This document shows, piece by piece, positions 30,291-58,752 of a stretch of DNA of 64,000 bases. Within the stretch, counting starts at the first letter, position 1. Each line of letters opens with the position of its first letter. The translations under genes and the position numbers were made by a program. The notes beneath the pieces are model-generated. The model had not been told where the DNA came from. It did no database searches and saw nothing but the letters and a program-made list of their open reading frames with translations. The stretch is taken from assembly GCA_964188305.1 (NCBI GenBank), contig OZ076894.1; one strand, written 5' to 3'. Source of the stretch: Podarcis bocagei (lineage: Eukaryota).

Positions 30291-31628
30291 AAACAACGAT
30301 GGACTTCAATATTTGATATCTGCCTGGTGATTTCCTGACCCAGTGTTTTATATTAGTATTTGACAGTGTTGATTGCTCACATGCAATATAAGATATCACA
30401 GTTGTGGGGGGGGGGGTTGGAATTTTACCTTTATGGAACAGTTTTATATTTGCCAGGGTCGTTCTGCATATCTTGCATCTAGCCTGTGCCCTCAGGCTAG
30501 ATCGCCAGTATCATTACCAGCTTTGAAGAAAGATTCAAGTACCAGCCTAGCTGGGGAGTGGGAATGCACCACTGTATCATTTTTTAAAGGCAGCAAGATG
30601 ACGAGTATTAATCGCTAAATTATCGCCCGAGTGTTCCTTTATTTGAGGAGCCCCTCATAAGCTAGCCAGAAGATAGCTTCCAAACCAATGTTTGACAATG
30701 GCTGGCGTACAACAGCATTTTAGGTAGTATTGGATAGTTGGTATGATATTCAAAATGTACCATTATAAAGTACAGCAAGCCTGCAACTTAAATGCATTTG
30801 ACTTGTGCACATTCGGCTTTATGCGCATGGCAAAACTGCAATATGCTACTGTGAGAGATGCCTATGCTTTTGAATGGAGAACATGATGAATGATTAAGCA
30901 TATTACAGATAGTATGTATACATTGCATAGCAATTATTAAGAAATGCATTCTGAAAGTCACATGGCTGTTTCTGCAGATAGGTTTCCTGTCCACTGGCTG
31001 CCAATGTGAAGGAATGTGGATATACCAGGTGAAATTAATTTACCAGTGTGAAACAAAGCCTTTGAGCACAGGGAAAATAAACTCCTGGAACACAGAAGTA
31101 TTCTTTCCTCCACAGTAGTAAAGATCATTTCCTGATCCTCCGCTATTCATCATTCATCATACAGCTTTCAGTATCCAACAATGAAATCTGTTTTCCTGCT
31201 GATTGCTTCCTCCATTCTTTTAATGTTTCTTAATGTGTAGGCTGTTGCAGCATTTTGAGTTGAAGAAACACAGACACATAAAAGATTCTTCCTATTGCCG
31301 CCGCCATCTACCCAGAAGAATTTGTATCATTTCATGTTAATCCAAGGCAAGGTTGGGAGAGCTAGGCCATCTCAAGTTAGATTTGATCTGAAAAGAGCCA
31401 CGTTTAAATTTTTCACCGTTGCTAAAAGAATTCCTTTCTGTGCTTGAGATTCATTTGGCAGTCAACCCAAAAAGTTAATCTGTGCTCATCTTCATGAAGC
31501 CAACATTGTTGTCATGATACAATTACATAATGACTTTGTGGCCTGCAGGTACATGGTGTGCCATTGACCCACACAACTCTTGTGCTGATGTAGCTCATTA
31601 TTTGTTTCCTCTTCACTTTTTGGTAGTA

Positions 31629-31846
31629 CAGTGGTACCTCAGGTTAAGAACTTAATTTGTTCTGGAGGTCTGTTCTTAACCTGAAACTGTTCTTAACCTG
31701 AGGCACCACTTTAGCTAATGGGGCCTCTCGCTGCCACCGCCACACAATTTCTGTTCTCATCCTGAAGCAAAGTTCTTAACCCGAGGTACTAGTTCTGGGT
31801 TAGTGGAGTCTGTAACCTGAAGCATCTGTAACCCGAGGTACCACTG
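31629..31846. mobile_element. pogo/Tigger-type MITE (family A)
   Basis: TA|CAGTGGTACCTCAGGTT ... AACCCGAGGTACCACTG|TA. Confidence 0.92.
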
Positions 31847-48174: not shown

Positions 48175-48801
48175 AAGGGATGGGTGAAAAATTTGGTTCC
48201 ATTTGCATTCAAAGGCAAATCTATCGAAGTTGTGAGAATGGGAGCACAGCCAGACTTTGAAATTTGCTATTCTCCAAATTTTGTGACGCAGTTCCCCAAC
48301 CAAACAGAGTTTCTAAACGTACATCTTTTAAGATGAAGCGTGCACAAAAATGAACATGTTTGGTGGGAAAGCATATATACAGTGGTACTTCTGGTTATGT
48401 ACTTAATTCGTTCCAGAGGTCTGTACTTAACCTGAAAATGTTCTTAACCTGAAGCACCACTTTAGCTAATGGGGCTCCCGCTGCTGCTGCGCCACCGCCG
48501 CACGATTTCTGTTCTCATCCTGAAGCAAAGTTCTTAACCCAAGGTGCTATTCCTGGGTTAGTGGAGTCTGTAACCTGAAGCGTATGTAACCTGAAGCGTA
48601 TGTAACCCGAGGTACCACTGTATTGGGGGAGGGGGGATTGCTGGCAAAAATGATTGCATTAGTCAGAACCGCATACAAAAATGGGCTTATTAGGAGAAAG
48701 TCACACTAAAATTGCAATGAATTTCTATGAGGCTGCTGCAGTACACTGGAGAGCTGAATTTAAAAATGGGAAACAAAGAGGCCCAAAATTGACACATCCT
48801 T
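48175..48801. mobile_element. Non-autonomous DNA-transposon-like repeat (AGGGATG...CATCCTT) hosting a MITE
   Basis: Same family as 7092-7524; interrupted at 48380-48620. Confidence 0.55.
48380..48620. mobile_element. pogo/Tigger-type MITE (family A)
   Basis: TA|CAGTGGTACTTC ... GAGGTACCACTG|TA; close to the 31629-31846 copy. Confidence 0.9.
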
Positions 48802-54272: not shown

Positions 54273-54546
54273 TACCATATTAGTAATAGAATAAAAGATC
54301 CAATCAGTGTGTGCTGGTTTGATTCATTCCCAGGTATGGGCCACTGACTATATGTCTTGCCACAGCAAAATTAGTACAGTGGTACCTCAGGTTACATACA
54401 CTTCAGGTTACATACGCTTCATACGCTTCAGGTTACAGACTCCACTAACCCAGAAATAATACCTTGGGTTAAGAACTTTGCTTCAGGATGAGAACAGAAA
54501 TCACATGGCGGCGCGGCAGCAGCAGGTGGCCCCATTAGCTAAAGTG

Positions 54547-55650
54547 TCTAGCTAGGATATTTTGGAAAATGTATTGCTCATTAGAATTATACAGGGACTC
54601 CAGCTCGATGCCTAAAGATTCAATCTTTTTTTCGAGGTACTGATACCATCTTGATTTATAGGAGTCCTTGAGCAGATCAGCGAGCAGGCTTGATGGAGAG
54701 CAGCGAAAGTGGCAGCGTAACCAGTACTTTATTGAGGTGGACCAGGCCCAATATTCCATTGTGTGTATGCCTATTTCTGCACACATTGTCTCATATTTGA
54801 TCGCAGCTGGGAGTCCAAGAATACGTCTCAGAAAGCTGGAGTGAATCTTATTTAAATCACTGTTATATGCTTGAATCCATAGCGGGATTCCATAGAATAT
54901 CTGGGCTTGCACTTTTGTTTGAAAAATCTGATTGGCCGCAGGAATAAATTGATTACCTTTCTGATAATAAAACCGGGCAACTGCTGATGAGGTGCACTTT
55001 GCCTGTTTTATGGCATTTGTGCGATGACTTGCCCACCCTAGATTGCTCTGGAATAAGATTCCCAGATACCTATAGATTTTTACTTGTTGGATTTCTTGCC
55101 CTCTTATTTTCCATTTCTCTAGTTTCCAACCATTTGAGAAGACCAAAATTTTTGTCTTCTCGTAATTTATAGAGAGTTTATTACATTCGCAGTAAAGGGT
55201 CAGAGAAGATATAAGACGTTTCAGACCCAAGCTCGTTAATGATAGTAGGACTGCATCGTCTGCGTATAATAAGAGAGGAACTGGTTTCTGATTAAGTTTA
55301 GGGGCATGTGATTCTATTTTTTGAAGGTGATCTGGCAAGTCTGATAAGAATAAGTTAAATAGAAAGGGGGCAAGAATACATCCTTGTTTTACCCCTTTCG
55401 AGATTGGGATGTCTGATGAAAGATGACCTATGGTGTTAAGGTTGACTTGACAGACATTGGAAGAGTATAGATTTTGTATTAGAATCAATAAGCGCTGATC
55501 AATTTTTAGTTCTGTGAGTTTCCTCCACAGCTTTGGGCGGTCAATTGAGTCGAATGCACCACGAAAATCTACAAAAGCAGCATATATCTTAGATTGCCTT
55601 TGAGATCTATATTTTTCAACCAAATGCATAAGTATAAGGCAGTGGTCTAA
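54547..55650 (-). pseudogene. Reverse transcriptase domain of a LINE ORF2 (inverted segment, uninterrupted frame)
   Basis: AAFVDFRGAFDSI, GVKQGCILAPFLFNLFL, LLYADDAVLL, KTKILVF and YRYLGI RT motifs in the 364-aa ORF 54535-55629. Confidence 0.93.
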
Positions 55651-56057
55651 TTATGGCGGCTGTAAACAAAATTTGCTCCCCCATATTCTATGATTTAAAT
55701 ATCTTAGATAGCAGAGTCAATTACGTCACTAAATTAATAATCCCAGCCCAACGTAGGGCTTTTATGCTGGCCCGGTTGAATGTCTTTCCCTCAGCATTTG
55801 TCTGGGGAAGATATCAAAACATCCCTAGAAACAAGAGACTCTGCAGATGCTCTATGAATGTCCCGGACACTGTAGAGCATATTCTCTTTCATTGCCCATT
55901 GTACAGTACGCTCCGTCAACGCGTGCTGTCCCCTCTTTTGGGTGGTCTGGAACCCCAGCAAGGTAAATGTGCGGGATTCTGCCTATCCGACGTTGACCAA
56001 AGGGTTACGGCGGGGGTAGCCGAGTTTTTGGCTGCAGTCCTCCAAGGAGCAGGTTAA
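55651..56057 (+). pseudogene. C-terminal part of the same LINE ORF2 (zinc-finger-like domain)
   Basis: WGRYQNIPRNKRLCRCSMNVPDTVEHILFHCPLY Cys/His motif, typical of LINE ORF2 C-termini such as RTE-X. Confidence 0.85.
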
Positions 56058-56075
56058 CAAGGAAAACCACTGATT

Positions 56076-56082
<7 letters not shown>

Positions 56083-56128
<46 letters not shown>
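56083..56128. repeat. (TA)n microsatellite within the LINE 3' UTR
   Basis: Direct observation. Confidence 0.95.
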
Positions 56129-56132
<4 letters not shown>

Positions 56133-58752
56133 TGTAGCCAACTGCTGCCTTTTTATATATATTTCAAGGCTTTTACATGTTATTTTTCCTTCTTACGGTT
56201 TTATTTGCATAATGCCTAATAAAGGTTTGATTTCAGATTTCAGATCAGCTAAAGTGGTGCTTCAGGTTAAGAACAGTTTCAGGTTAAGAACGGACCTCCG
56301 GAATGAATTAAGTACATAACCAAAGGTACCACTGTAATGTGAATCAACATCCCAAAAGTGGCACTCTTTCTTTTCAGGGAGCTAGCGACTCCTTTATTGA
56401 AGCCAGGTTTCAAAAGTGACAGATTCCACCTCTGAAGCCTTCTGCTGCAGTCTCTGAAACTTCTTTTGTTAAAGCGCGGAAATTTAAGGTTAGGAACTCC
56501 TGGTGAATTCGTTCTTGAACAAAGGTTGATTCATGATAACCCTAAGCAGTTCCACCCAGCACTGCTTATGATACCTGCTAGTTTTATATTGATCCTGGCA
56601 TGCAAAATATTGCTGAGTGCACCTTCCAGGCTTCAGCACCATGCTGAATCCACATTATTTTGGGATTAATGTGTGATAAGGTGTTGGCGCAGATAATCCC
56701 TGCAAGAACAGGGGCTAATCAAAAAGCTGTGTCTCGTCGTGACCATGGATGTTTTTCTCTTAAGCATAAATCCCTTAATTGGTCTTTAATGCTTATTTGC
56801 ATCAGTTCCATTTTGGGTTGTCAAAATAGTGAAAGAATTTGTCTCATCAGAAATGCAGCTACTCTTCTCCTCCTCTCCATGCGGCAGCAGTGCAGAATAC
56901 ATTTCCCATTAATTTGGGGGCAAGTGGAAAATTGGTGTATAATTGCCAGAGAAAAAATAGTCGGTTACCACATAATGATTTCTCTGCACTGCTTGTTATC
57001 AGGGGCATTTGCAATGGTAAAATTAATTTTACTTACTATAGCTCTTCTTGCGGTAATAAATCAGACTCTTAAGTCACCATACACTTCTGCAAATGGTTAC
57101 AGATGAGCATCTGAAAGACACATAATTCTGGTCGTCTCCCCAGATGTTTTAGCATTGATGATCAGGTAGCACTAATTCCTTTCTGCATGCCTAATTCTCA
57201 TTTGTATGAAAATCCAGATAGAAATGAAAGTAATGTATTAGCTGTATTGGAGAAAATGTTAAGTCAATTATACTCCTGCAAGATTTATAAGAACTAAAGT
57301 GAGTATAAATTTGAATTGTCAAAGGAAATTTTACATGCATTAACCACTCAGTAAAATCCATCATATGTATTTAATTATGTACTGAGTTTTGAACTGCCAT
57401 CTCCAAGGCAGAAGAAGAAGAGTTTCCTTAAACTACTACTGTTCATAGACATTGTTTTGAATTATACATGTAAAAGATTCTGTGTTTTTCAAAAGCTGAA
57501 ACCTTTCAGAACAGCCTACAGCCTTCTCTCTTCCTCTCCCCCTCTCTCTCTCTGTGTATTCTCATATCATTTGTGAGAGGACTCTCTCATCTGTGTTTGG
57601 TGAAACAGAATATGAGTAGCAGAAATCAGTAGCACAATGGTATTGTTACCAAAAATGTAGATATGGATGAAAGAAATGCATACATTGATATAGAGAATCG
57701 GTAACAGTCATAGAGAAACCTAGAAACAACAAAGACAGCTCCGCAATACGGTCCGCAATATGTTTCTGTAATGAAAAAGTTATCCCAAGTTTTATTCAAA
57801 AGCATTAAACCATTTCCTTTGATAAAGTATTTCTCTGAAATGTGTTGGGAACTGTATCTATTGTATAACTGTTGTTGTTTTCTAAATTCACTGCGGGAAA
57901 ATACAATCTGAATACGATGTAACCTTCCCTTTGGGGCCATGCAGAGGATGTGAGTTGCAAAGTCCACATTTTTAACGCAGAAAGTCAATTCCGGGCTTGT
58001 TCAGCAAAAGGATCTTGGGACATAGGTTCATGAAATAATTCTGCCTCACTATGTAGAGCAGTGGTTCCCAAACTTTCCCCCCTCTGGGCCACACTTTCAG
58101 AATAAAAATTCGCTAGTGCCACACCAGATTCTTTATTGATAAGAAACTCATTGGAAAGCAACAAGAAACAACACCTACCCATGCTTGATTCATAACATAG
58201 AACACAGCTACTTTATAATATGATCATGGGGCTTCCAGAAAGTATATAACAATGCAGCTGCATAAGAACTTGAACTATTCCCAAAATATAATATTGATTG
58301 TCCTTGAATCTTCCAGCCACACTTGCCATCCTCTCCTGTCACACCCTTTGAGAACTCTTGATCTAGAGGCTAGTGATGAAATTCAGTATTCTACATTCAA
58401 ACTTTGTCAGGATTTCAGAATTGAAACCTGTTAGAATCTTTGACTTTTCCAAGTTTCACACCTGAAACTTGACTTCAATGCATCTTTTTTAAAAAAATAA
58501 AAATCTTCTCCCTCCCCATACAGATGATTTCTGTGCAGCTGTGGGTCTTGGATGAGGTTTTCCATCCTGGGGAAACACATAGCTTTGGTATGTGTGTGCA
58601 TTTTGTCCTCCTGATTAGAGTCAACAATGCCCAGTTACAGAGTGTTCTGACTATCTTCTTTTTCCTGTGCAGATTAAACAATAACCACAGGGAGCTGAAC
58701 ACATGGGAAATGAGCTAGCATTAAACAACTGCAGCACTCAGAACCTGTTTAC

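Follow-up and report, generated by a model that had tools for sequence, protein, structure and literature searches.

Does a long interspersed nuclear element (LINE) whose two parts point in opposite directions record one integration event or several? The question was raised by a locus in the lizard Podarcis bocagei, in a window of 64,000 nucleotides (contig OZ076894.1 of GenBank assembly GCA_964188305.1; by window we mean the whole stretch of DNA that was analyzed, which is free of any N). Near the end of this window a LINE copy carries its 5' arm in antisense and its 3' arm in sense orientation. We consider it very likely that this composite arose by one retrotransposition of a non-L1, non-poly(A) LINE of the apurinic/apyrimidinic endonuclease (APE) type, which was resolved by twin priming.

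One target-site duplication around the composite insertion

The insertion comprises 1,700 bp (54547-56246) and is flanked by two exact copies of the 10-mer AGCTAAAGTG, which was found exactly twice in the window (54537-54546 and 56247-56256). It interrupts a short, TA-flanked repeat of ~250 bp that resembles a miniature inverted-repeat transposable element (MITE). At three other places in the window (48378-48622, 31627-31823 and 2700-2909), copies of this MITE could be aligned across the insertion point. As these copies run CCCCATTAGCTAAAGTGGTGC unbroken and contain the 10-mer only once, they represent paralogous empty sites, from which it follows that the insertion produced the second 10-mer. 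Its duplication around the insertion is far beyond chance. One target-site duplication (TSD) encloses the whole composite, which is a feature of twin priming.

A previous reading of the locus from its letters alone (the sequence-only reading) had proposed a single TSD-bounded insertion with an inverted 5' arm. The exact 10-bp TSD, the three empty sites and the antisense match to the reverse transcriptase (RT) family RVT_1 bear this out. From left to right, the locus is composed of the following features, in which the open reading frame 2 (ORF2) of a relative, P0094, serves as reference for the residue numbers and UTR stands for untranslated region.

54376-54536, plus strand: left part of the host MITE; the three other window copies align over the insertion site; inverted termini CAGTGGTACC (start) and GGTACCACTG (end)
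54537-54546, no strand: left copy of the TSD, AGCTAAAGTG; exact match to 56247-56256; single in the paralogous empty sites
54547-55651, minus strand: inverted 5' arm; RVT_1; approximately residues 561-928 of the 1,075-aa relative P0094
55650-55651, no strand: inversion junction, an AT common to both arms; placed with contigs of other copies (records 5, 22 and 23)
55650-56057, plus strand: coding part of the forward arm, IMAAVNKICSP..., with the CCHC motif CRCSMNVPDTVEHILFHC and a stop codon at 56055-56057; residues 937-1075 of P0094
56058-56228, plus strand: 3' UTR, containing (TA)26 at 56077-56129 (Tandem Repeats Finder, TRF) and the 3' box ATGCCTAATAAAGGT at 56212-56226
56229-56246, plus strand: tail (GATTTCA)2.4 + C (TRF, repeat at 56229-56245); no poly(A); abuts the right TSD copy
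56247-56256, no strand: right copy of the TSD, AGCTAAAGTG; its left edge is the position of the first-strand (bottom-strand) nick in the empty site
56257-56336, plus strand: right part of the host MITE; ends with GGTACCACTG, then TA

The two arms, their ends and their junctions

The left 1,105 bp of the insertion (54547-55651) encode, in antisense orientation, part of a LINE ORF2, namely its RT and thumb region. On the minus strand a stop-free open frame covers 54547-55650 (LDHCLILMHLVEKY...EQYIFQNILAR) and matches RVT_1 with an E-value of 3.4e-24. The arm is 42-55% identical to the homologues P0001-P0007, P0094 and P0095, and a conserved LDHC on the minus strand extends it to at least 55650. 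Read in the RNA sense, its 3' end (...CTAGCTAGA) abuts the left TSD copy without UTR or tail, and the arm can therefore not be the product of a separate target-primed reverse transcription event.

The right 597 bp (55650-56246) hold the ORF2 C-terminus, the 3' UTR and the repeat tail, all in sense orientation. Within the coding part, 55653-56057 on the plus strand form an open frame of 134 aa, which has a CCHC motif and matches zf-RVT weakly. When compared with the C-termini of nine homologues, the forward arm showed 33-50% identity (35-50% once full-length relatives were added). Its 3' box is common to the relatives L002 and L003, of which L003 ends in ATGCCAATAAAGGT followed by (TTGAAT)2 and L002 in ATGCCAATAAATG followed by (TTACTG)2. 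As the same type of 3' ending is present in both relatives, the 3' end of the insertion is the canonical end for such elements. The sense 3' arm with its canonical end thus lies at one TSD copy and the antisense 5' arm at the other, a second feature of twin priming.

The conserved terminal box, ATGCC(T)AATAAA(G/T)GT (in full ATGCC(T)AATAAAGGT), holds an AATAAA signal in all three sequences (window 56212-56246, L003:5708-5740 and L002:1784-1815). Just 2-2.5 copies of a lineage-specific 6-7-nt repeat follow it (GATTTCA, TTGAAT or TTACTG). Box and short repeat together probably serve this LINE lineage for recognition and priming. The (TA)26 microsatellite at 56077-56129, within the 3' UTR, was skipped by the reads; it may belong to the family or have expanded in this copy.

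A word search with the RT arm returned proteins of 42-55% identity that span both arms (P0001-P0008 and P0012), which originated from ENA and Logan assemblies as well as from Naja, Rhineura, Podarcis and Anolis. In nine of nine aligned spanning homologues, 8 residues that are absent from the window lie between the two arms. In P0001 these residues are IWDIEKQI, located after the equivalent of ...KRR and before INARANQICSP, the counterpart of IMAAVNKICSP in the window. The inverted arm corresponds to approximately residues 561-928 of P0094 and the forward arm to 937-1075. Matches to P0094 were recorded at 569-928 and 937-1065, and the same spacing was observed in P0001, P0002, P0003, P0005, P0007 and P0012. 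On these alignments the arms are placed as neighbouring parts of one ORF2 mRNA, of which ~8 codons (~23-24 nt) appear to have been lost. The density of substitutions relative to the read majority was equal in the two arms (among those listed, 23 in the 1,105 bp of the inverted arm and 12 in the 597 bp of the forward arm), which fits one event.

Contigs of other copies of the family were used to place the inversion junction. One contig of 378 nt (record 22) tracks the window over 55510-55651 and then diverges, and two further contigs match from 55650 onward only, where they are preceded by 12 and 66 unlike letters. As the contigs stop at 55651 or start at 55650, the arms share the dinucleotide AT and not the whole palindrome TAATTA. 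At the left junction, other family copies match through 54546 (inclusive end counts were checked against 55658 and start 55650), which gives an overlap of 1 nt. The overlapping base, a G inside the left TSD copy, would begin a Leu codon (CTN), and Leu is found at this position in five of the nine homologues.

These data refine the sequence-only reading in two respects. The two segments had been called consecutive parts of an mRNA; they are adjacent, but 8 residues are missing in comparison to the nine homologues. The proposed microhomology at TAATTA is reduced to the AT at 55650-55651, as the contigs of other copies do not share the rest of the palindrome. The proposed twin-priming geometry itself is supported by the neighbouring ORF2 segments and by the tail next to the right TSD copy.

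A different palindrome, TAGCTA, is present in the target (CATTAGCTAAAGTG) and again 2 nt inside the inverted arm (TCTAGCTAGG), within 54533-54560, with a chance expectation of roughly 2%. This recurrence may be coincidental. TAGCTA was rejected as an annealing site, because a primer paired there would end in a 3' flap of 5 unpaired nt, which does not fit the intact left TSD copy.

Twin priming and the alternatives

In the proposed sequence of events, the endonuclease of the element would nick the bottom strand of the MITE at 5'-CACTTTAGCT^AATGG-3' (as deduced from the empty site), and the bottom-strand 3'-OH would prime on the tandem-repeat tail of the LINE RNA, which would result in the forward arm. 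The top strand would then be cut 10 bp downstream, freeing the 3' end ...AGCTAAAGTG-3' as a second primer. This top-strand end (...AAAGTG) would anneal inside the same RNA molecule, ~620 nt from the RNA 3' end. From there the second cDNA would run ~1.1 kb toward the RNA 5' end and form the inverted arm, which would extend the left TSD copy without a break. Both cDNAs would finally be joined at the 2-nt AT overlap, where microhomology may have played a role, and the ~23-24 nt of RNA that separate the site of priming from the site of stopping would never have been copied. Twin priming typically entails, and predicts, such a small loss where the orientation changes, and it accounts for all features of the locus.

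The copy numbers of the two repeats were estimated from raw reads of ~1x coverage. The host MITE reached a depth of ~30,000 with read boundaries at 54375 and 56336, and it was seen in four of four read runs. For the LINE, the depth in one run at an identity of at least 90% ranged from ~80 in the RT region to ~150 in the 3' region, which suggests a copy number of the order of 100, with 3' ends over-represented as usual. The entries listed in the table of read joints were all MITE 'skips', which are empty-site forms of other MITE copies, and no strand-changing joints were among them. A second copy of the LINE was not found within the 64-kb window. The word search with the C-terminal arm returned nothing at E <= 1e-10, and an exhaustive search of 1.84 billion representatives returned nothing closer than 50% identity.

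Several points weigh against a history of one twin-primed event. None of the reads or contigs listed bridges the three junctions of the locus, and the assembly stands here without independent confirmation. No family member above 55% identity was found (55% was the best match in the word search with the RT arm), and distant homologues and short contig pieces therefore had to serve for placing the breakpoints and sizing the gap. The 2-nt and 1-nt overlaps at the junctions are candidate microhomologies that are compatible with chance extension as well. Finally, the locus is a single case from which no frequency can be derived.

Four other histories were considered, and the one that survives best is a later inversion. 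A 5'-truncated copy of ~1.72 kb would have inserted first, and its 5' 1.1 kb would have been flipped afterwards with a small deletion. The end product could look identical to the present locus, and ~24 nt are indeed missing at one breakpoint. However, a breakpoint would have had to hit the boundary between element and TSD exactly and leave the left TSD copy intact, and the breakpoints showed no inverted repeats by which an inversion could be mediated. We consider this history very unlikely.

Slightly less likely again is an assembly artefact, in which a misjoin or a collapsed repeat made the inversion. The lack of a junction-spanning read among those listed and the position of the locus within a ~30,000-copy repeat could speak for an error of this kind. 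Such an error would not explain why the composite is enclosed by a perfect TSD, why the break falls exactly on the TSD and why the arms adjoin in the reading frame.

A double insertion, in which two members of the family landed independently and in opposite orientations at one site, is made conceivable by a family on the order of 100 copies at an identity of at least 90%, but it is highly improbable: the inverted arm has no 3' UTR, tail or TSD of its own and ends inside ORF2 (at approximately residue 928 of 1,075), the arms abut in ORF2 within 8 codons with a single TSD around both, and the internal junction holds no remnant of a second TSD or tail. No more credence is due to a single cDNA that snapped back or switched templates without a second primer. 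Template switching is known for LINE reverse transcriptases, but snap-back would leave an inverted duplicate of the forward arm, and this is contradicted by the actual arms, which do not overlap (561-928 versus 937-1075 of P0094). The inverted arm also continues covalently into the top-strand copy of the TSD.

The element, its host repeat and known systems

The copy was compared with its full-length relatives, which encode an ORF2 of 981-1,075 aa with Exo_endo_phos_2 or Exo_endo_phos (APE), RVT_1 and a C-terminal CCHC motif. An RNase H was not found in the 316 aa that follow the RT of the relatives. An ORF1 is located directly upstream on the same strand, with 462 aa in L001 (L001:409-1797) and 423 aa in L003 (L003:1063-2334); from its ORF1 start to its 3' terminus, the L003 element measures ~4.7 kb. 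The ORF1 proteins had no match in Pfam, the Pfam L1 ORF1 families included, and showed weak similarity to each other (E 3e-5, with a shared core of ~70 aa). They are largely of low complexity, and in a protein atlas search the core weakly resembled RRM-like or ferredoxin-like folds (DbpA, ACT).

In a maximum-likelihood tree, built from 124 RT regions without labelled clade references, the element fell into a lineage with 100% support and had P0001 as its nearest neighbour. This lineage holds all named squamate sequences (Podarcis, Anolis, Naja and Rhineura). In comparisons with solved structures, the RT matched human L1 ORF2p over the RT domain only (127 bits), and R2 more weakly. With the APE profile, L1-EN was matched at E ~1e-10 to 1e-13 and the TRAS1 endonuclease at 1e-4. 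The RT and APE are nearer to L1 than to R2 and TRAS1 in these comparisons, which do not separate the RTE, I and L1 groups.

L1 elements have a poly(A) or A-rich tail, an L1-type ORF1 and an ORF2 of ~1,270 aa. As judged from its sequence, the present element is not an L1, because of its (GATTTCA)n tail, the ORF1 of its relatives, an ORF2 of ~1,075 aa and a likeness to L1 that is confined to the RT and, weakly, the APE. Classical RTE elements have a single ORF (APE and RT) of ~1,000 aa, lack a C-terminal Cys-His domain and are ~3-4 kb long. The relatives appear to depart from this organization as well, with an upstream ORF1, a C-terminal CCHC motif and, in L003, a length of at least ~4.7 kb. The label 'RTE-X-like', which the sequence-only reading had given to the element, was not confirmed.

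The terminal inverted repeats of the host MITE are imperfect and ~25 bp long (TACAGTGGTACCTCRGGTTAC...). Its inverted termini are flanked by TA, which suggests a Tc1/mariner origin of the repeat.

Twin priming was defined for L1 (Ostertag and Kazazian, 2001, as cited in PMC4245944). Among more than 200 de novo inserts, Yamaguchi, Kajikawa and Okada (2014; PMC4245944) observed 5' inversions only for human L1 in human cells, apart from one insert of Nimb-2_DR in DT40 cells, and none for ZfL2-1 with its 5-bp TSDs. The suggestion that an inversion of this type outside L1 would be novel was therefore overstated. In the same study, 5' inversion was proposed to need overhangs of 10-20 nt (a TSD of 10-20 bp) and to depend on the LINE species and the host. 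The 10-bp TSD of the present insertion falls within this range and agrees with the overhang idea. A literature search did not find a genomic survey of twin priming outside L1.

The locus resembles twin-primed L1 copies of human and mouse in its single TSD of at least 10 bp around an inverted 5' and a forward 3' arm, in the use of neighbouring RNA segments, in the small loss at the inversion point and in the short overlap at the junction. It differs from L1 in the tandem-repeat tail that follows a conserved 3' box in place of poly(A), in its shorter ORF2, in the ORF1 of the relatives, which matches no Pfam family, and in its lizard host. With Nimb-2_DR, a zebrafish element assayed in chicken DT40 cells, it shares a 5' inversion in a non-L1, two-ORF, APE-type LINE with TSDs of ~10-15 bp (PMC4245944). 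The Nimb-2_DR case was one of ~30 inserts in cell culture, whereas the present insertion arose naturally in the germline of a squamate. Among reptilian elements, Vingi, RTEX and RTE of Anolis are likewise APE-type LINEs without RNase H, and RTEX families also have tandem-repeat tails, theirs including 6-7-mers (PMC7561263, PMC13708176, PMC3747384). The relatives carry an ORF1 of 423-462 aa and a C-terminal CCHC motif, whereas Vingi-1_Acar is described as compact and single-ORF (PMC13708176) and classical RTE likewise has one ORF.

The case is a natural germline addition to the known phenomenon of 5' inversion, in another non-L1 LINE, and its mechanism was already known. Beyond the single locus, we tentatively suggest that twin priming is a general outcome of the integration of APE-type LINEs and not a speciality of L1 or of mammals. 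Even a 'stringent' LINE that starts at its tail would then be able to start the second cDNA internally from the top-strand overhang. In this lizard, such inversions may occur across several clades (the present family, BovB, RTE-mobilized short interspersed nuclear elements and L1), with a frequency that would be set by TSD length and host factors. One case supports this idea and does not establish a new principle; its interest would rise if such inversions were common across squamate LINE clades.

The RT of a tail-specific LINE would, by this example, be able to extend a primer that is annealed at an internal site of the RNA. For the annotation of reptile genomes, pairs of inverted LINE fragments are to be scored as single events. 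So far 5' inversion has been treated as nearly L1-specific, and a germline case outside L1, with a TSD of 10 bp, supports the view that the decisive factor is how long the 3' overhang is, and not L1 itself.

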